Positions 33,462-46,886 of a stretch of DNA of 64,000 nt are shown one piece after another. The first letter of the stretch is position 1, and the number at the start of each line of letters is the position of its first letter. Location of the stretch: positions 59,458,001-59,522,000 of the forward strand of contig NW_026262690.1 of the NCBI RefSeq assembly GCF_021869535.1, written 5' to 3'. This stretch comes from Mytilus californianus. Its lineage: Eukaryota. The translations under genes were made by a program, and so were the position numbers. The notes beneath the pieces were generated by a model. The model saw only the letters and a list, made by a program, of their open reading frames with translations. It had not been told where the DNA came from and made no database searches.

Positions 33462-33614
33462 CTTTTTTAGACATCCTTTAAAATTGTGTGTAGGCCTGTT
33501 TTTGTAAAGTGGACTAGGACCTCCACCAACATACAATGTAATGATATGCAACATGACATATGACCCTAAAGTAGTCCCGTCTAGTCTATGTGAACCATCT
33601 ACCTCTACATGGAT
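33462..33614 (-). CDS. Nrx-1: Neurexin exon 4: LNS2 C-terminal part (not in ORF track)
   Basis: tttatttcag|IHVEVDGSHRLDGTTLGSYVMLHIITLYVGGGPSPLYKNRPTHNFKGCLKK|gtaaag; 153 nt, phase 0 to 0. Confidence 0.93.
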
Positions 33615-33862
33615 CTGAAATAAAGAATAAAACTTTATGACAAAGTTAAATGTTGAATTATTAACAAATCAGCCAAGAAAAAAATGTTCTTGTCTTTCCA
33701 TCTTGCATACTGACAGTTTTTTTTGTAAATCATAGAGTATTTATCCTATTCTTTACTTCTTCTGAATTCATTAAGTCCACTGTTTTTACTGCAGAAGATA
33801 TTCATAAACAAACCGTTCTTCTAACTAATGGTCAAGTTACAAAATCATTCAAAAAATTGTTA

Positions 33863-34059
33863 GAGTAGATTCATTAATTTTTGTGGGTACTAAATTTTGT
33901 GGATTGAGGAAAATTTGATTATTTTATGGTTTTTCCAAAGTTTAAATACAAGCCTAAGAGAAATTTATACTATGTTGAACATTTAAATTTGTGGTTCATT
34001 TTTACCCATGATATCCATGAAACTTGGTACCCAGCGAATATATAATAATGAATCCACTG
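33863..34059. mobile_element. Second, more degenerate copy of the 23258 MITE family
   Basis: Shared internal sequence (ttttgtggattgag, aacatttaaa); right TIR aatgaatccactg|TA. Confidence 0.65.
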
Positions 34060-34302
34060 TAATTGTTATTTTATCACAATACCCTTCAGTGTTTTGTCTT
34101 ATATATGCTTCAAGTTTAAGCCTTCTAAAGCTGGGTCAAAGATTAACTTTTAATGCTCTTATTCATCTAAATCACATGCTGATGACACAAGCAAAACCAA
34201 CCAAAAGCCATTTGCTAAGGAAGTGAACATCTTACATTCACTGTCAAGTCTCAAACAATGAGCAACAGCCCACATTGTATTACTAGGCACACCTTTCTCC
34301 AT

Positions 34303-35398
34303 AAACTGTTATCACAGAGATATGTCTCGCCTTTTTGTCGAAGTCGATGAACCATGACTGAAGGTACATGGCTAAACAATCTCCATGGAATGAGATGTGC
34401 CAATGCTAATACAACTGCATACCAAATACCATTGACTTATTATAAGTCGTTCCCTTTAAACAAACCTAAACACAAACATTAACTTGTAAACTATGTAAAA
34501 GTTTAAAAGTCAATGAACCATGATCAGGGGTGGGGCTATATAATCTCCATGGAAACGATACTTGCAAATGCCAATAAATTTGCATACCAAATATCATTGA
34601 CTTAACATTAACAGTTCATCTTAAACTGATCTAATCACAAACTAATACATGAATACTAAGCAAAAGTTTCAAAGTAAATAGACCATGACTGAGGGGGCGG
34701 GGCCAAATATTCTCCATGGAAATAAGATGTGCTAATGCTTATACAACTGAACACCAATTAACATTGGCCTACCACTAATGGTTCCCCTTGAACTGACCTG
34801 ATCACAAACTAATACATGTTAACTTAGCAAAATTTTCAAAGTCTATAGACCATGACTAAGGGGGCGGAGCCATATAATCTCCATGGAAATGAGATATGCT
34901 AATGCTTATACAACTACATACCAAATATTATTGACCTACCACTAGTGGTTCCCCATAAATTGACCTAACCACAAACTAATACATGTAAACTATGAAAAGT
35001 TTCAAAGTCAATAGACCTTGACTGAGGGGGCAGGGCCAAATAAACCTCATGGTAATGAGATGTGCCAATGCTTATACAACTGCATACTAAATATCATTGA
35101 CCTACCACTAGTGGTTTCCCATAAATTGACCTAATCACAAACTAATACATGTAAACTATGAAAAGTTTCAGGGTCAATAGACCTTGACTGAGGGGGCGGG
35201 GCCAAATAATCTCCAAGGTAATGAGATGTGCCAATGCTAATACAACTGCATACCAAATATCATTGACCTACCATTAGTGGTTCACCATGAACTAGACCTA
35301 ATCACAAACTAATACATTGTTGAGGCCAATACTGCCGTCGCTGACGCTGGAAACAGCATACCTATGTCTCGCTTTTTGACTCCATCAAGGCGAGACAA
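34303..35398 (+). mobile_element. HINE/pearl-like family A copy 4 (6 core repeats, 5' internal deletion)
   Basis: Same termini; core units very close to copy 1; lacks the ~75-bp segment after the 5' subterminal motif. Confidence 0.8.
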
Positions 35399-36202
35399 AA
35401 AAGTAAAATAAAACAATTAAGAATTTAATTTGTACCTCTATATGTTTCTTCCAAACTTAACACAAAAAAGCAACAACTGAAACATCAAAATGAAGCTGTA
35501 TCTCCTATTGCCACAAACACAAAGTCTTTCAGTTTTGTAAAGGTAAATGTTGGTAGAAATTGTGCAGAAGTGTAAAAAGTTATACTTATTACTATAGTTA
35601 TTTTAATACTATGATTTGATATGGATTAAATGCAAGGGGTTTTCTGGTCAAGGAAAGTAGTTGCTGATCTGATTCACATTAGACCCAGATTACAGCATCA
35701 ATGGCCCACTGTATAACAATTTTTCATAACACTTCTATAGTTTTAACTGACAATTTTAGTAAATAGAATTGAAGTGTTTGAAAATTTGTCACCAGCACTG
35801 AAAGTTCCAATTGCTCTATAAGTCTGTAAATCTCCTAAATAACCTAAATTTGAAATGTGTCAAATATCTCGATTCCCCTGTAAAAAGTTGTATTTTGAGT
35901 GGATTAAATGTGGTGATATAACAGCTTTAAACAGGACAAAGTATACTTTCCTAATTGATTTTTGTACATCTGACAGATAAAGACAATGCTTGATAGAAAT
36001 AGAGAAAATGATCTTTTAAATCAATTAAATAATTGTCAGACATAGATAAATTACTGTTTGTTTTCCCCCATGGTACTGTTCTAATACTATATAACTCATC
36101 AATCTTAATGCTGAAAAATGAAAGACCTGTTTTCCTTTTCTTGATAGTAATCATTGTAAAATGTAAAAATATCCATACAAACTAATGCTTTCTTCTTGAG
36201 TA

Positions 36203-36411
36203 CTGTAAATTCAGAAATTATTGCATTGTATTTATTAATGGGAATTATGCGACTGGGCGAGTATCGCAATAATAAGAACTCGCATTCTGATATTTGATAC
36301 ATATATATCTGCCTTCAGATTTTCCCGCAATGGCAATAATTAATCTCACATTTTTGTCCTTTCTTAAAAATTCGCAATAATAAATGGACACAACAATTTC
36401 TGAATTTACAG
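36203..36411. mobile_element. Tc1/mariner-type MITE with TA TSD
   Basis: TA|CTGTAAATTCAGAAATT ... AATTTCTGAATTTACAG|TA. Confidence 0.8.
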
Positions 36412-36486
36412 TATAACATACCCGTAATCATATATTTACTTAGCTGGACTATGGTTTTGAATGTATGATAAAGATGATTGTTACAT

Positions 36487-36855
36487 CATCACAAGTTGGT
36501 TGACCGTTATGGAATATCCATTTCACAGATGAGAGCAGATATGTTCCAATTGTTGTAACTACAATCCAGTCCCCTTTTCCCCTAATGTGACCTACCAAAT
36601 TAGACTTATTACAGGGTTTGTACTAACATGAGCAACACAACAGGTGTCACATGTGGAGAAGGATCTGCTTACCCTTCCGGAGCACATGAGATTACCCCAA
36701 TTTTTGGTGCGGTTCGTGTTACTCAGTCTTTAGTTTTCTATGTTGTTTGTCGGTTTGTCTGTTGGTCTTTTTCTTTTTTAGCCATGACGTTTTTATCAGT
36801 TTATTTTCAACTTATGAGTTTGAATGTCCCTTTGGTATCTTTTGCGTCTCTTTTA
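36487..36855 (+). mobile_element. 3' fragment of a retroelement (end of ORF plus 3' UTR); family not firmly assigned
   Basis: Encodes HHKLVDRYGISISQMRADMFQLL*, then ggatctgcttaccc..gagcac; a partial second copy lies at 45486-45660. Confidence 0.5.
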
Positions 36856-39473
36856 CATCATATATATACCTTGATCCAAGTCACTTGCATTATCGCTATT
36901 TATCGCTATTCAATATTTATATGCTAGTGTTCTAGCTAGGATAAGGGCAGAGGGCAGTTTCAAGATGGTTTCTTGTCGTAGAAGCAACAAGTTGATCATG
37001 TTTATAGATAAAAGTTAAAAAATTAAATGAATTAATGTATTTTTGCTTGATTTTTAGTATTTTAGGGTTGTATAAAGCTTTTTCAGTAGTAAAATAATTT
37101 TATTTGCATTAAAAAGATATCTATTTATTTTCAGAAAACAAAAATGCATAGGCCATCAAGGAGCAGAGAAAAGGCAGAGGGGTACAGTACCTTTTATTTA
37201 GGGCAAGCTAGGCCACTGGATATGATAAAGGAAACAGTACATGCAAAAATGTGTATAACACCTGCTGTATCAATCCTAGGTCAATATAATTGCTCCTGGG
37301 TATTCTTTCTGTTATTGGTGAGTCAATTTGATATAGCAGGTTACTGATGCAGATTTTGCTATGTATGATCAATTTTGATATTGCCTGATAGTCACTTCAG
37401 CTGTTCTTAATAGTCAATACCAGTAATATATTCATGTGAGTATGTGGAGCTTAGCACAATTGCAAATAGAACGTTGTACCGAAATTAATAAAAGGAGTGT
37501 GTTATGTCTTTTACTTTTGCTATTTTTTTTGCATAGTCAATGCTAATCACAACATTAAGTTTTATTACTCCATTGTGCTCCGTTTATTTGTGATATTCAC
37601 AAATTATTTAAGAAAATTAACGCCTCTATTTTGTGTTCTTTCATTCATTAGAATTTCAAGTGCATGAAATGAACTAGTGTATTTCTACCTTACATTAGTG
37701 TGTTCATTTTGTCAAAAATAAAACCCCTGGAAAACACAAGTATTTTGCTTTCAAATGGAAAGAGTACACTGCCAAAAAATATTCATTGTTATATTAAAGT
37801 TCTTAAATATCAATAAAGAACAGTAATAACTGTATATTACTCAAGGTTCATTTTAAAAAGCATCAAAGGACCCTTATGCTATAATTTAAAATAAGTAAAG
37901 GTGATGAATGTTTTGTGGAAGGCTACCCTAAACAATGGTCATATCAGTTACAGGATCCTGACGAGTCATAAGGAACAAACATTTCTACAATACTTCTGAC
38001 ACAGTGTACAAGACAACTAACATGCAATGGTTGCAGATCACTGTTATTAACTATGCAAGACTATGTCATCTCTACTAGCATACACTTGTTTAGATCAATG
38101 GGAGTAAAACAGGAAAGAAACACACTTAGATTTAATAATTCAAACCAATGTACAATAAGACAATGGTCTTAATTAAGATAGATAACCATGTGAATTCCTT
38201 AAAAAATAAATAAACCTTATATTTTTTTACTATCCTTGATTTTGCATGAAGTTATTAAGTCAGCTAAAATCTATTCTCTTTTTTCCTTAAATGTAAGTAA
38301 AAACTAATTAAATTTATCCATAGCTCAAAGATATCAGGAGTGTTTCTGATTGTAATCTGAACAACTGAGGCTAATTATAATGTCCATTCTATATCAGAAA
38401 ACATCCATATTGTATGAGCACAGCATCAGAACAAGTTTCCTGTTGAGATTTGAAATCACCGACTTTTGCCTCATTACATCTTATTTTTTCCACACAAGGA
38501 GTAAATAATGTGATTTAATTTCAGCCTGACCAGAAATACTGTTGAAGTGTACAGTGACAAGTATAGGTGCCAACACTAATGGATAAAACAATTAAATCTA
38601 AAAGCAACTACTAGAAATAACCATTCTGCATGAAAAACATTGTAGTGAGCCATACTTATCTGACACTTGTATTCTAAATGTTCATTATACTTTTAAATGC
38701 TTTTTAGCATTGTCCTTGTATAACACAATACTAATTGTAACTGAAAATTAAAAAAGATTCATATTCTGTTTGGTATATTTTACAGTGTTTGCCAATGTGT
38801 CCAAGATATCAGTACTGGCAAAAATGTGTTTAAGACAAGATTTGTTCTGATATAGCATAACAGTAACAGTTATTTATCTTTTGTTTATAAATGTTTCAGA
38901 ATTACATAGGCTCTGCTGTCTCCATATTTTTTTAAGATGGAAGTTTATAATCAACTCAATAAGACAAGGGATTTATCTTATTATAATTTTATGAAGTAGC
39001 AGAAAAAAGAAAGACAAAAATGAGCAGAATTCAATTTAGTTTGTGACAAACTTCAATAAAACAGCTAGGGTATAATATCAAGAGAAAATGATAAAAAAGG
39101 AAAATAAAAATAATAATTGGATTCATAGCATAATTACCTGTTCAAAATTATGTTCTCAAGTTACTAAGGTTATATAGATTTTCTCTTGTTTATCCCCATT
39201 TAACAGACTTTTTACTCTGTTTTCATCTAATTATATATAGGTCCAATAAAATTACAGCCTTCTTTCTGATAATTATTAGTTCTGTTAATGGCATTATCAC
39301 AACTCAATTCACTGATTCAGAAAAAAAGACTATAACTTCTGTCACAGTTAGTGACACTTTGCCTACAGTTTGAATTGACAATCACATGAAACACAAGTTA
39401 TTTGGGTAATGACCATGCAGGATTACACAAACATAAGACAAAGCGTGCAGTGTTGGGGGACATGCTTACTTAC

Positions 39474-39500
39474 TACCGCTTTAGCATTCCCTGTAGTGAG
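39474..39500 (-). CDS. Nrx-1: Candidate 27-nt alternative microexon (LTTGNAKAV) at SS2-equivalent position
   Basis: tttttacttttttgccatcag|CTCACTACAGGGAATGCTAAAGCGGTA|gtaagt; phase 0 to 0; GCATG and TGCATG downstream. Confidence 0.7.
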
Positions 39501-41712
39501 CTGATGGCAAAAAAGTAAAAACTCAAACATGATGCAACTATACAATACTACTGTGGTTTCAAATTAAATATGTGCAATATTTAGCAATTGCAATAAGAGG
39601 TGCCCATAATTTGAACATGCAAGCAATATTTAGGATAAAAAACTGCTGAAATCACTTTTCACATCTGCATACACATATTACTTCCATTCTATTTTACACA
39701 TTTCTTACATAACTTTCTTTTCCTCTATATTTTTGTATTTTGATATATTTAAACAAAGTTATCAACTACATCATTTTGATCAGAAATAAGTACAGGACAA
39801 TAACCTTAGAACCATCCTTAAAATAAAGGCTTTATCATATATTTATTGGATTTTTTTAATGGGGACCAATCCTTTAATAAAAGTTCAATATAAAACGTAA
39901 AATTTCAAGACAGATTTTTTCTTTTATATTACATGCTAATAGCTAAATTTGATATCTATGTTTTCCCAAATTTTTATCTTTTAAATCAGTGATACCAATT
40001 TTATTGTCAAGTTTCATCAAAAATATATATAGTGAGTTCCAGGGCTTTACACAGAACCAGTTCCTTGATATATCACCAAGGTTAATGCCTAGTGGGTAAA
40101 TGTTTTAAGCAACCCAGCTTATAAGGATATGGCACCATACAGTACAACAAACTTCAGGAAGGCATTATTATTTTTCATTGACTTGAATCACAATTGTAAT
40201 ATTTCCTTCACCTTTTACTATACCAGCTGGTATTTCCAACAACTTTATGTAAATGTGACTTGACTAAGTATTTCTCTCCATCTATAGCAGTAACTATAAT
40301 ATACCTTGTTCTTCAGAAATTTTCACTTCTAGTAAACATTCAACATTAAGTCATCTCATTATTAAAAGAGTTACTACAAAGTGGTTGACTTTCGCAGAGT
40401 TTTAATGGCCAATTAACCTGTTAGTCAGGTTTATTTTCAAGTCTTCCTTGTCTTTGATTCTGATCTTAATTAAAAGATTGCAATTACATGAGATGATGTT
40501 TTAGCAATTTTATCACAATTGCGAAAATAGCAAAAATAAAAACCTCAAAAAATTATCCACTTTACATTACTGATGCTAAAGTACTGGTATAATATGTGGT
40601 TTAAAATACTTGTAATTATTACATCATATAATCTATTAAATTAAGTATAAAGAATAATAATAAATAATAAAGCTTGCAGATAACAATGTTTTACAGTGCT
40701 GACTCCAAATGACCAATGTTTATCTCAAACAGGAAATGAATGAACAGTTGCTCTATGATCATTTTAACATGGTAGGCATATGTTTGTCAACATTTTACAT
40801 TTCGCTAACGCTTGGTATAAAGATATTGACAAATATGATGCCTACCTATGTTAAAATGAGCATAGAGCATGGCATGAATTATGTCTTAAACAAATAGATC
40901 ATATCAAATATTAAATTTCATTTCACTACAATAATAAAGCATATCTGTTACTAATATGCCAATATTTTTCACCTTTTATGTTGATTTTCTTCTGGAGGAT
41001 ATTAATTTTCTCTGACAGAATTTAGAGAGAATTAATTTCCTGCAGACAATATTATTAATTTTGGGGTCTTGCACTTATAAAGTAGATACAGTCCAATTAA
41101 AAGGACGTCTAGATTTCTGATTCTAGACGATATAATTGACAAAGTTATCATAACATCCTAAATCCATTAGATTTATTTCTCTTTATTAATTTACTTATGA
41201 AATCTTAAGGTGATAATGTTTATTCTGTCAGTTCCATCAGTAAGTATCATTTTTCTCTTTTCCTATACACATGGGGTAATCCACCACTAAGTCATTATTT
41301 GAAAGTAGTGCTAAAATAATTCATAGTTGCTAGTAATTTGTATGAGACCAATTTATTTACCATCTTATTGTCCCTTTTTCTCTCAATTTGTACAGAAGGA
41401 TCAAAGACAAGGTAGCAACTGCTAACAGAGCATAGAAATCTTGTGTTTCACTATGGGACTCATCAATTTGGCACTCAGACTCGGAGTCAAAATAATGTGT
41501 CCGGGTAGAGTGACATGTTTTCCTGCAGACTGTTACCTTGTGAACTAGCACAATAAATCCAGCTCAGTACAAAGCAGGGTTCATTACCATATTGCTCTAA
41601 CATGTTCTCATCCTGAAAGTGCATTTTATTTGCCACTGGACATTAAGCAACCAAACATCTATCCATCAATCTCTCAGGAATGCTTGTCACAGTGACTAGG
41701 GAGGAAATCAAT

Positions 41713-44706
41713 CACTGGTGTTAAACTGATAATCGTAACTGGAATTACGACAATCCCAATATAGCGACGGCAGAAATAGGTAAAATTGTTTCAGTCATTT
41801 TTCTCAAATTTAGCCCGTTGTTGTCAAGAGTTACTCAGCTGCAAGGTTTTTCTATACCATTACATCATATTTGAATCGTAACGGTGCACTATAATTGTCA
41901 AAGCGCTTAGAAAATTGCCGTCGAAAAATTCGGGATGATAATCGTAATTCGATGGCATTTTTCTTGTTTGATAATCGTAATTTCTTTATGGGATAATAGT
42001 AACTGAAAATAATAAATGTGTCTTCCAGCTTGTCAATGGTATTTTGTGTGTAAAAATGGCAATGTCCAGTTAAACGATGACATTAACGTGCAAAATAAAA
42101 AATAATGAAGCAACTTACAGGTTAATATTTAGGACAAATTTATCTACATGTATATATATCTCGATTTATAACTGACAACAATATGCATAACCTTTTAATA
42201 TATACATGTACCTGTTAAAGATATGGAAAATGAAGCAGCTGTCGAGGCAGTTATTGTGGTAAATAGATAATTTAAATTCTTTCAAAGTTTCAATGTTGTT
42301 TTCAAGTTTAGGGTTTTTTTTGGAAGTGGGGAAAAGGGGGGGGTATTAGCATTATCCCATATCCCAAAAGTGCAATCCTTTCAAATGAAAGTCCTGTATA
42401 CCACATTTCAATATGCCATATGTTTTGCCTCAAATATTGCATATATCCAATCAACTTTTAAATCAATAAAAAGGGCAGGTTAACCTCCCCTATCTCAACA
42501 TTCCCTATACCACCGGGGTGGCTGTGGGTTACTTCCTATATAAATATATAAGTTATAACATGGATCAGATTTTTGGTCTACGGCAATATATGAAAGGGGA
42601 TATTTTTTTTTAATTTCAGCAGCACGCCAGAAGTGACACCACCCCTTCCCCCGTGCCTTATACAGACCTCATTTATCATAAGATTGCTGTCAGTTTAGAG
42701 TTCCCTGTTGTTTATATTCGGGGATGGGTCCACAATGTAAAAGGGAAATAGGGGTGGGGGGTGGGGTGCTATAAACTGAACATTTATACTAAATTTCTGC
42801 GAGAAATGAACAAAATTTTCCATCAGTTACTTAGCTGCATTATTGGATTTAACAGTTGATACTTTGATTGGTGGATATGAGTTTTCATTTTGCCCTTTTC
42901 CTTATATTTCAATAGAAATACATATAGTTGAATTTTGGAGTGAAATGTATCCCGGTTAAAATAGCCGTTCATATTTTTCAAGTGAATTCACTTTTGTTCT
43001 GTTTTACACTGATATTTCATATGATTTTAAAAATTAAATTCAAGTATTTTGATTAAATACCTATGTATTTTAGGACGTTTTTTTAAACAGGGTGGATGGT
43101 AAAGGATCTAGAATAGTTACCAGTTTATTGTTACTATTGTTTATTGTTACTTGTGTTTATTGTTCCTTGTGTTAATTGTTCCTTGTGTTTATTGTTACTT
43201 GTGTTTATTGTTCCTTGTGTTTATTGTTACTTGTGTTTATTGTTCCATGTTTATTGTTACTTGTGTTTATTGTTACTTGTGTTTATTGTTTTTATTAGCC
43301 TTAACTAAATGGCGCGTATAGTCTTGCGAAGTATTTGAAGGACTGAAAAAAAAACCACAAATATATATTATCAAATTGAGAATGGAAATATATGTGTATT
43401 GGTCCTCAGAAGGCATAATATGTAGATCATCACGGTCGAAACTGGTTTAATTACAAAGACTTTAATAGATAATCAATCAAATATTTTGAGCTTCAGAAAA
43501 ATGCATGACAATTATGAAAGGCTAATTTTTGTTTTCATTTGATAGAAAAGTATTAAGTATATGGTAATTATGCAAGTACAAAAATGTTCTTTGTTACCTT
43601 TAATATTTTTTCTCTACAATAACTTCCATGCATATGTATGCAGCATATTTTTCATATACCAAGTATTTATGATTTCTTAAGTTGCAGTCATTCTTTGAAT
43701 AAATATAGCTTGTAAGGTAAATTAAGGCCACATCAATTTGATTTCTTGATCTTCTGGCTTTTGGCCAAACTATTAAAGAACACAAATCCATGTTTGCCAA
43801 TGAACTCCACGTCACCATGTGCTTAACTCCATAACAAACAAAGCATTCCAACTTTTCTCTACTCTTATATTATCTTTAAACGTTTAAAGGATGTCATATT
43901 ATTAGAATGCCAAACTAAATTGGTGTTGTTAAAATTTATAGTTATTTTCTGAGATATCGAAATGTCAGTGACGGTCATGAAGTAGCTAAGCATTTTTATA
44001 GTATTTATGGGCTATACAACTTTTTGCACATTCAAAAAGGTGTGACATTTGTTTTCAAGTCCGTATTTAAATAGAATACCAAACAATATTTCTTTTTAAC
44101 TCTAAACATGAAGAGATCATGATGACATTTTTTTAAATTTTCTCCCATATTTTGTGACGGTCTTAGTTCCTGGAGTTTTCAGTATTTTAACATAGTTCGT
44201 GTTTCCCCATTTACAAATTTATAGAAGTAGTCCCCCTTCCAATTTTATGATATATACTAGTATGTAGCTGTTTACATTTGAACTGTTAATCATATATGCA
44301 CAAAAAGAAATGTCATAAGATGTGGGAACGTTTTCGTGATTAATTCATCACCATATTTTCATCATATGCTTTTATGTAGACGTATTTCGTGTCAATACCA
44401 ATCAAACACTATCCAGTTACGATTATCTTTTTATTTATTAATACCGAAATTACGATTATCATTTTTGAGAGTTACAATTATCATCCCGAATTTTTCGACG
44501 GCAATTTTCTAAGCGCTTAGGCAATTATAGTGCACCATTACGATTCAAATATGATGTAATGGTATAGAAAAACCTTGCAGCTGAGTAACTCTTGACAACA
44601 ATGGGCTACATTTGAGAAAAATGACCGAAAAGATTTTACCTATTTCTGCCGTCGCCATATTGGGATCGTCGGAATTCCAATTACGATTATCAGTTTAACA
44701 CCAGTG
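41713..44706. mobile_element. ~3-kb non-autonomous DNA transposon with CACTG termini and ~235-bp TIRs
   Basis: 41713-41947 is the reverse complement of ~44470-44706 (about a dozen mismatches); ATCAAT lies directly on both flanks; repeated GATAATCGTAA subterminal motifs; no transposase ORF. Confidence 0.85.
43123..43290. repeat. 16-bp minisatellite, about 10 copies, inside the 3-kb element
   Basis: tttattgtt(a/c)cttgtg repeated. Confidence 0.9.
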
Positions 44707-45141
44707 ATCAATGCAGTCATGGAAAAGTCACTTTATGCCTTAATGACATGTAGAATATAAGTTTAGGAAAATTCCTCAATTGATGTTTTAACTTAGGTGT
44801 ATCAAATTTTAAGTTGACTGTTAAGAGTTTTATCACAGAAAGAAGTACAGTTTAATCTTTTTAACCAGACATGCATGAAGCTATTTAACAGTTAATTCCA
44901 TCAAGTATTTGTTTTTGAACAGTTTACTTAAAAGTATATGAAAACAATGATTACATTTGATTACATTTGGTATATGGAAAACTAAAGCCACAGTATGTAA
45001 TTCTGTAGACTATTTTTTTCATTACAAAAGATTCTAGCTATTACTATACTGGTATATTTGGAATGAGCACTATGAATACTTTAAAGTGAGGTAATAAAAT
45101 GTGCATCTTTAAGACTAAAAGTGTACTCATTTTTTCGTTAC

Positions 45142-45302
45142 CTCTCTCGATTTTCTTTTAACCACTAGATGGTGCCACTGGTTATCATCAAATCTGTAGC
45201 CATTGGCTGGCAAAAGTTCTTCCCATGGGCCAGATCCTAAGTTGACTCGGACAAACACACCTCCATTTCTTAGAGTGATGATGATATGGTCTGTCTTATC
45301 AC
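45142..45302 (-). CDS. Nrx-1: Neurexin exon 3: LNS2 (not in ORF track)
   Basis: tttag|(G)DKTDHIIITLRNGGVFVRVNLGSGPWEELLPANGYRFDDNQWHHLVVKRKSRE|gtaacg; 161 nt, phase 1 to 0. Confidence 0.93.
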
Positions 45303-46886
45303 CTAAACAAATGACAATACAAGTCTGACTTATTTTGATGCAATCAACAAAAATGTAAACTGTAATGTATTACACCAGAAAAATAATTTTTCTTCTTTGC
45401 TAACATTAACAAAACTTATAGCTTCCATACCAATTAAAAGAGCATACTTGTTGAAATGCTATTTTAAAATAATATGAGCCATATGTGGAGCAGGATCTGC
45501 TTACCTCTCCAGAGCACCTGACGTCACCGTGGTTCTTTTGGTTGGGTTTTTGTTGCTCAGTCTTTAGTTTTCTATGTTGTGTTTTTTTATGCCATGGCAT
45601 TGTCAGTTCATTTTTGACTTATGAGTTCAAATGTCCCTTTGGTAGCTTTCACCTCTCTTTTTGAAAATTATTGAGAACAAATTCTTCAGGTATTGCAAAA
45701 ATATTTTGACCATAATTCATCTTTATACATAATATGGATTATCAAGCTCCTCTAAAAATCTAAAAATATTAAACTTCATAAAAATAGTTACCACAGTCAC
45801 CACTGCATATTTATGTGCTTGTGGTGTATGCATAGGAATGTGTCCCTGTGCTTGTGGTGTATGCCCTTATGTAGTTAAGGTTGTCTGCTTGTGAAATTAA
45901 TATGAGAACAGCTGTACTTAAAAAAGATATTTAATCCATATCAATAATTTTGTATATGAAATCTTGTGGCAAAGTATCTTTTGAGGTAAGGCTGTTGTTC
46001 ATATCTAAATATTAACTGGAAGACCACAAAATAAAGCAGTTTTGGCAACTTTCCTCAACTGCTAGAAGTTTGAAAGTCTTAAGCAGATATCAAAGTCAAA
46101 ATTAATTGTTTTTGTTACTGATATCTAATTGACTAATGTTATATAAACATCTAAAGAATGTAATTTGATAGATTTATAGAACTTTGTAAATTTGGGATTA
46201 TAGTCTTTTTTACCTTATCCTTGTTCTGTAAAAGTCTTCCAGAGAGGAGGATAAGGGTAAATACAATTAAACAAAGATTCTTAGAACTAATTCAAATCTG
46301 TACTTCAATTTTACGCATTTATAAAACTGTATTGGACATGCAGATTTAAAAAAAATTAACTGTAACAGTGTGTTTTATTGGAAGAAAATAGTTTCAGAGC
46401 AATAAATCTGACTGATATCTTTCAAAGTTAATTAACGTCAAACAATATAACAATAAATGACATATTTTATAAAGGTTTCCATTAACTTAATTACTCTACA
46501 TTTCAACAGATAGTATTTCACAGAGAAGAATCTCTTATAAAATCAAGATTCAAATAAAATCAACATGCAAATTATAAAACAATATAAAATACTGTATCTT
46601 TTTATTGACATTAATGCTTTGAGGAAGATTTATGTACATTGAAAATTGTTTCCAAATAATTCATGACAAATAATTTATAGAAACCTGCTTAAAAATCAAT
46701 AAAATAGAACTAGCTTTATAATTTGAGCTGTATCTATTTTGTTCACCATAAGTAGGCTCTTTGTACTGCAACGAACCTGATCAGACTTTTATCAAACGAA
46801 AACAGGGGATTACAACAACAGAGAAAATCCTCTGTATTGTTGTTGATTAATATAAGCTATTCTTACACACATATAAAGCTTCTTAC

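Follow-up and report, generated by a model that had tools for sequence, protein, structure and literature searches.

A candidate 27-nt alternative microexon, conserved among molluscs, at the SS2 position of an alpha-neurexin gene

The stretch of DNA analyzed here, 64,000 nucleotides in length and referred to throughout as the window, contains almost the whole of an alpha-neurexin gene, which lies on the minus strand and was traced by tblastn of neurexins from LNS1 (61452-60742) to the cytoplasmic tail (3983-3759). Two constitutive exons of this gene, each assigned by Pfam to the laminin G domain, flank the region of interest: exon 3 (45142-45303, minus strand), which encodes the first part of LNS2 and ends with ..VKRKSRE in phase 0, and exon 4 (33462-33614, minus strand), which encodes the second part of LNS2 and starts with IHVEVDG. 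Between them lies a phase 0 intron of 11,527 nt (33615-45141, minus strand), and within this intron, at positions 39474-39500 of the same strand, is a candidate 27-nt cassette microexon of phase 0-0 that encodes the residues LTTGNAKAV and divides the intron into segments of 5,641 and 5,859 nt.

A profile-free search using the upstream exon as query recovered neurexins of many animals, and the best alignment was to LNS2 of bovine and rat neurexin-1-alpha (PDB 3qcw, residues 276-327), with the exon end ..VKRKSRE placed against ..VTRNLRQ of NRXN1-alpha. Vertebrate proteins in the search set vary at precisely this residue, reading RNLRQ|VTISVDG, RNLRQ|HSGIGHAM|VTISVDG, or a further form with 15 additional residues, and the corresponding inserts have been described as SS2A and SS2AB (PMC6856630). 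Site 2 of the honeybee neurexin coincides with an exon junction as well (PMC2570956). Dozens of short genomic protein fragments belonging to very different animals end at the same residue and then run on into the intron, the read-through beginning with the 'V' encoded by GT, and since fragments from such different animals stop at one and the same residue, the position of the SS2 intron is ancient. The candidate lies in the intron context ..R.SR[EK] | [IV]....DG, between two LNS2 exons and in phase 0, and constitutes an LNS2 insert at the exon junction that follows the equivalent of vertebrate ..TRNLRQ. Judged by alignment, the 11,527-nt intron is the SS2 intron of vertebrate neurexins, and the placement made in the original prediction is borne out by the ..TRNLRQ alignment, the vertebrate insert forms, and the ends of the genomic fragments.

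Read along the minus strand, the sequence proceeds from gagtttttacttttttgccatcag on the acceptor side through the 27-nt exon, CTCACTACAGGGAATGCTAAAGCGGTA, to gtaagtaagcatg on the donor side, and the codons of the exon (CTC ACT ACA GGG AAT GCT AAA GCG GTA) specify LTTGNAKAV. The acceptor region (39501-39525) consists of a pyrimidine tract (82% Y over positions -20 to -4), a TGC at -9, and a terminal CAG; the AG and the tract are common to the orthologs discussed below, the TGC is not. The exon is followed by the donor GTAAGTA (39467-39473), which is invariant in all six aligned mollusc loci, and then by AGCATG (39461-39466), in which GCATG starts at intron position +9 and which, on the basis of motif conservation, is a putative Rbfox-type downstream enhancer. 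A second such motif, TGCATG, is located at +55 (39414-39419; GCATG at +56), and several orthologs likewise contain two to three copies. When the minus strand was re-read, every statement in the earlier description of the acceptor, the nine-codon exon, the donor, the GCATG motifs, and the flanks was found to be correct. The additional proposal of an 8-aa form made by way of an upstream GT was rejected: the GT in question, which falls within the final codon (GCG|GTAGTA), is a weak donor that none of the orthologs shares.

The SS2 intron also contains several repeats. An element of approximately 3 kb (41711-44708) carries 240-nt inverted repeats (41711-41950 and 44469-44708; 94% complementary) and has no open reading frame longer than 83 aa. 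RNA reads of run X15 extend over 41.4-44.5 kb in an orientation opposite to that of the neurexin exon reads, and a 1203-nt contig of run X7 maps there. The element resembles a non-autonomous TIR transposon with transcription from the plus strand; alternatively, the reads stem from copies located elsewhere in the genome. Within this inverted-repeat element, approximately 13 copies of a 16-nt minisatellite, GTTTATTGTTNCTTGT, occupy 43107-43312. In the part of the intron downstream of the microexon, a 167-nt unit is repeated in tandem five to six times (34335-35334). Lastly, two intervals (40773-40971 and 41370-41767) display contig depths of 50-340 in all three runs that supplied contigs, together with many loose ends, and are probably fragments of abundant transcribed repeats.

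Gene models deposited in RefSeq and GenBank for five oyster, one scallop, and seven gastropod species include a 9-aa insert at the identical junction. Specifically, isoform X7 of Magallana gigas neurexin-1 (XP_065945350.1) reads ..LLLTRSSRK|LTVGNAKYI|VKMTVDG.., and the equivalent residues are LTIGNAKYI in Crassostrea virginica, Saccostrea cucullata, S. echinata, and Ostrea edulis (XP_056022325.1 for O. edulis) and LTRQNGYTG in the scallop Mizuhopecten (XP_021341137.1). Among the gastropods, the insert is LTRDKGVCF in four Haliotis species (XP_048259833.1 for Haliotis rufescens), LTRDRGVC[SA] in Nucella and Babylonia, LTRDEGVCY in the land snail Candidula, and LTRDRGVYY in Pomacea. Nucella lapillus possesses two distinct neurexin models (P0265 and P0266) on different contigs, both with the insert (LTRDRGVCS and LTRDRGVCA, respectively), and these may be duplicates of the gene or haplotypes that were assembled separately. 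Both kinds of isoform, with the insert and without it, are annotated in nine molluscs, namely O. edulis, S. echinata, C. virginica, Mizuhopecten, three Haliotis species, Babylonia, and Pomacea; similarly, Magallana gigas has a RefSeq isoform that carries the nine residues and transcript-assembly proteins that lack them. Inclusion in these other molluscs is taken from annotated gene models. The candidate is a further member of a cassette that is already present in public mollusc gene models, and the search of the literature returned no description of an invertebrate SS2 cassette. The original suggestion of a microexon is supported by these orthologous inserts in oysters, scallop, and gastropods, and the conservation in other bivalves by which it was to be checked was found, in that the 9-aa insert is present in the oyster and scallop models.

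Comparison of LTTGNAKAV with the oyster exon, LT[IV]GNAKYI, reveals identity at six of nine residues (L, T, G, N, A, and K), with V in place of I at the end. At the level of codons, one is identical to that of the oysters, five differ synonymously, and three differ non-synonymously, such that five of the six shared residues are specified by different synonymous codons; the flanking exons are 37-55% identical to those of the oysters. This pattern of one, five, and three codons is the mark of an exon that codes for protein and is kept by purifying selection. We compared the window with the neurexin loci of five other molluscs (Saccostrea cucullata, Ostrea edulis, Candidula unifasciata, Haliotis rufescens, and Babylonia areolata), and in each of the five the insert is encoded by a separate 27-nt exon located in the same intron. 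The alignment of all six loci contains an invariant AG|CT.AC.A..G at the acceptor boundary in addition to the invariant donor GTAAGTA, and the candidate shares with the cassette a length of exactly 27 nt, an open frame, a Leu-Thr start, GTAAGTA, and a GCATG within 45 nt. Taken together with the evidence detailed below, these data lead us to regard the candidate, with a probability of roughly 0.85, as a real, conserved, and functional alternative 27-nt microexon of the alpha-neurexin gene at the SS2 position.

Transcript evidence in this lineage was sought by placing the reads or contigs of four runs on 39380-45320. The only informative run is X27, from which a contig of 943 nt and depth 35, derived from a related organism with approximately 1% exon divergence, covers exon 3 and continues past 45142 with the reverse complement of TCTATGTGAACCATCTACCTCAACATGGAT, that is, ATCCATGTTGAGGTAGATGG, which, apart from one synonymous change, is how exon 4 begins. 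This contig is the skipping form, in which exon 4 is joined directly to 45142, and it demonstrates both expression of the gene and splicing in accordance with the model. Neither inclusion junction (45142>39500 or 39474>33614) was seen in the four runs, all of which are of low power: the raw RNA reads of X15, the sole RNA run with raw reads, cover exon 3 to a depth of approximately 5 and the microexon to a depth of 0, and so have very low power, the contigs of X35 and X7 either end before the junction or have loose ends that are unlisted, and assembled contigs drop minor isoforms. X27 also contains unspliced read pairs at depth 2 across 39393-39658, which are uninformative either way, and a word search of a protein collection with exon 3 matched three fragments only, all of them genomic read-throughs from other species and none a transcript of this animal. 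Of the two points on which the original prediction was to be judged, conservation in bivalves was found, and reads joining 45142>39500 or 39474>33614 were not found in these low-power runs. Because the reads of low power supply a skipping contig and no inclusion junction, inclusion in this species is something that we infer. That skipping should be the bulk form is to be expected, because transcript assemblies of oysters show skipping only, despite the presence of the exon in oyster gene models.

The same observations are what could be anticipated of a relic, namely an exon orthologous to the mollusc cassette that this lineage has ceased to splice into its mRNA and that has not yet decayed, given that the X27 contig represents the skipping form, that none of the four runs yielded an inclusion junction, and that the protein collection contained no transcript fragment bearing the insert. 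Such a relic would nevertheless have to have retained, all intact, its open frame, AG, pyrimidine tract, GTAAGTA donor, and downstream GCATG, and the five synonymous against three non-synonymous codon differences to oysters suggest that purifying selection has continued to act upon it. Moreover, the oyster transcript assemblies mostly skip an exon that the oyster models include, and the read data available here are low-powered. We consider a relic exon unlikely, and favor a microexon that is still in use.

How inclusion of this microexon might be controlled is suggested by the sequences that surround it. A GCATG starts 9-42 nt after the exon in six of six mollusc loci, often in two to three copies and often as TGCATG; GCATG occurs in the 45 nt upstream of the exon in none of the six. 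The motif is found in only 3-12% of 45-nt windows of these introns, giving a joint chance of 3.5e-7 over five independent lineages, and this value therefore points to activation of the Rbfox type. GCAUG located downstream of a cassette exon promotes inclusion in Rbfox-regulated exons. The genome itself contains an RRM exon of this type (G000:C143:39159630-39159734; L009:1504-1599, minus strand), identified by a search whose match was then compared with PDB entries; the best PDB matches of the 32 residues that it encodes are the RRMs of RBFOX1/2 (E 1.7e-13), and the exon likely belongs to an Rbfox orthologue. A genome search with the Pfam Fox-1_C profile was blank and uninformative. Judged by motif conservation, Rbfox-type activation of the candidate microexon appears most likely, and the original interpretation of the downstream GCATG as an Rbfox-type motif agrees with its retention in five independent mollusc lineages. 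In the oysters, Saccostrea (L001:13033-13080) and Ostrea (L002:13514-13561) differ very little over approximately the first 45 bases of the intron that follows the microexon, and this conserved intronic block, gtaagta.ccatggca.tggt.agttaccatggtagcatgtgc, includes GCATG.

An alternative view of the regulation accepts a real cassette exon and attributes its inclusion mainly to an activator of the SRRM/eMIC type acting on the UGC at -9, rather than to Rbfox. In its favor are the length of 27 nt, the TGC situated 9 bases before the AG in the window, and a microexon programme reported for both flies and mammals (bioRxiv 10.1101/2021.02.24.432780). A TGC within 30 nt of the AG is, however, present in none of the five other loci (Saccostrea, Ostrea, Candidula, Haliotis, and Babylonia), all five of which have the downstream GCATG; the nearest TGC elsewhere is at -34 in Haliotis, and the remaining loci contain none within 40 nt of the AG. 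A genome search for SRRM_C (PF15230) produced no match, and its controls were equally blank, so that the search is uninformative. Because the TGC near the AG is confined to the window among the six loci, the suggestion in the original prediction that it marks the exon for SRRM/eMIC lacks the backing of conservation and was not upheld, and we hold an eMIC-type driver to be very improbable compared with Rbfox-type activation.

Whether splice signals alone could single out the exon was assessed within the intron, where 259 frame-preserving, stop-free AG..GT segments of 9-60 nt occur and where the candidate is the only one of the 259 to combine a strong donor, a pyrimidine tract of at least 75%, and Y at -3. 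Dinucleotide-shuffled introns contained one or more such sites in 4.7% of trials, or in 0.3% when a GCATG within 100 nt was also required. The rest of the window, both strands considered, holds three comparable sites, which corresponds to approximately 0.3 expected per 11.5 kb, and because real sequence yields comparable sites at this rate the splice signals by themselves are not decisive. By comparison, when the 64-kb window is translated in all six frames, LTTGNAKAV alone among the 9-mers attains six or more of nine identities to the oyster microexon peptide, and a degenerate pattern of the exon plus donor has a single match in the 1.65-Gb genome, at the candidate site, and 0 matches in JGI metagenomes. 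At the level of sequence, it is the comparison of the peptide with the oyster exon that settles the reality of the candidate exon. A chance pseudo-exon, in which an AG..GT pair and a pyrimidine tract in a long AT-rich intron are never used by the spliceosome, would accord with the background of approximately 0.3 equally good sites per 11.5 kb and with the lack of inclusion reads, but six of nine oyster-exon residues in the same intron, phase, and length are not expected of it, the invariant GTAAGTA and downstream GCATG are common to five other mollusc lineages, and its probability is very low.

The likely consequence of inclusion for the protein was explored with an AlphaFold model of the oyster LNS2 with its insert (mean pLDDT 89.8), in which the insert residues, 102-110, lie in an extended hairpin composed of a strand (91-103), a turn (104-105), and a second strand (106-115). 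Specifically, the strand preceding the junction runs through L-T, the turn falls at V-G, and N-A-K-Y-I lengthens the strand that follows. As modelled, the insert lengthens a beta hairpin of LNS2, which accounts for the conservation of the central Gly (or Gly-Asn). In vertebrates, the SS2A insert extends beta9 beside the surface that contacts ligands, and its presence makes neurexophilin bind more strongly and prevents the binding of dystroglycan; invertebrates have no neurexophilins (PMC6856630, PMC12665717). Because invertebrates lack neurexophilins, a ligand of the dystroglycan type, or an unknown one, is the likely target of the molluscan insert.

These considerations suggest the following mechanism for the microexon. 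By default, the exon would be skipped, giving ..VKRKSRE|IHVEVDG.. in the protein. In a subset of cells, presumably neurons, the exon would be included and LTTGNAKAV added, most likely through an Rbfox-type protein bound to the conserved GCAUG near the strong GUAAGUA donor. At the rim of LNS2, the nine added residues would then form a longer beta hairpin that turns at the central G-N, and could in this way alter the choice of ligand by LNS2, dystroglycan-type ligands being the obvious candidates by analogy with vertebrate SS2. A change in LNS2 binding is to be expected because the vertebrate SS2 insert, located at the same spot, switches ligand binding.

Related segments at the same junction are also found in arthropods, where nine residues read ITRATGFCH in a spider, ISGPESLCH in Daphnia, ISSGTSFCR in a locust, and ISSITSFCR in Drosophila, and where a barnacle has a segment of 10 aa, LVDSGHSVCY. 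The arthropod segments and the gastropod LTRD.GVC. versions fit the common pattern [LI][TS]xxx[GS]xCx. The segment is a separate 27-nt exon in Daphnia pulex (L004:13501-13527), between introns of 320 and 169 nt, and lacks a GCATG in its vicinity; in Drosophila grimshawi (L005:2770-2796), it has merged with the exon upstream. As it is present in every isoform seen, it is apparently constitutive. Because arthropods carry this related segment at the same junction, the exon is probably older than the split between molluscs and arthropods, with alternative use in molluscs, and, of the two origins in molluscs that the original proposal offered for SS2-type regulation, ancestral or convergent, the ancestral one holds for bivalves and gastropods and is probably extended further back by the arthropod segment. 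The versions in the window, the oysters, and the scallop do not contain the Cys found in most gastropod versions, and as the pattern reads, oysters, scallop, and this animal have lost the insert cysteine. No insert is annotated in the models seen of Asterias, Lingula, Owenia, and Patella, an observation that concerns annotation only and does not show the insert to be absent. A possible link between the cysteine of protostomes and the 7-aa SS2B piece of vertebrates was rejected, as the 15-aa form in the search set reads ..VNKLHYL and contains no Cys.

A broader and decidedly tentative scenario is that a microexon of approximately 27 nt, extending the hairpin at SS2, existed in the protostome (possibly bilaterian) ancestor and gave rise to the vertebrate inserts, to the arthropod segment that is now constitutive, and to the Rbfox-flanked cassette of molluscs, with the cysteine lost secondarily in pteriomorph bivalves, including this animal. 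Were a common ancestral SS2 microexon of this kind to be confirmed, alternative splicing of neurexins at SS2 would not be a vertebrate invention. Extensive alternative splicing of neurexins has been regarded as exclusive to vertebrates in a 2025 review (PMC12665717), and a 2011 review held that vertebrate neurexins acquired their splice sites (PMC3229692). Together, the window and public gene models show that molluscs possess, at the SS2 position, a conserved microexon in alternative use, accompanied by a conserved downstream GCAUG. Oysters, snails of the Aplysia type, and abalone are systems in which one could ask whether an SS2-type switch in LNS2 is an ancient means of tuning synaptic adhesion, and the question is thereby raised of what an SS2-type insert switches in animals that have no neurexophilins. 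For the annotation of this genome, the candidate marks an exon of 27 nt that will escape standard pipelines.

Set beside known systems, the candidate most closely resembles the 27-nt cassette of other molluscs, with which it shares intron, phase, length, the Leu-Thr start, the GTAAGTA donor, and the downstream GCATG; the introns that flank it measure 5.6 and 5.9 kb, as opposed to 0.46 and 2.5-4.2 kb in oysters. Its peptide, LTTGNAKAV, differs from all the other mollusc versions, and neither an annotation nor a transcript containing it turned up for this species. The arthropod segment has the same position and, with the exception of the barnacle, the same length, and differs in being apparently constitutive where the mollusc cassette is alternative. 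Like Rbfox-activated exons, the cassette is followed within 60 nt by copies of GCATG that have been kept across lineages, and an Rbfox-type RRM is encoded in the genome, although the position of the motif drifts from +9 to +42 between mollusc lineages. With the neural microexons governed by SRRM4/eMIC, the candidate has in common its 27 nt, its residence in a neural gene, and, in the window, a UGC near the AG, a UGC that is not conserved at any other mollusc locus examined. Finally, the likeness to vertebrate SS2 (SS2A, the 8 aa HSGIGHAM, and SS2AB, 15 aa) comprises a phase 0 intron after ..R-x-x-R-[QE] in LNS2, a small frame-preserving insert, the same hairpin, and alternative use. The vertebrate 8-aa part was reportedly traced by Tabuchi and Sudhof in 2002 to an alternative donor, not to a cassette. 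The two further differ in that LTTGNAKAV has no similarity to the HSGIGHAM(+7) inserts, so that the insert sequences themselves do not match, and in that the vertebrate ligand neurexophilin is lacking in invertebrates.
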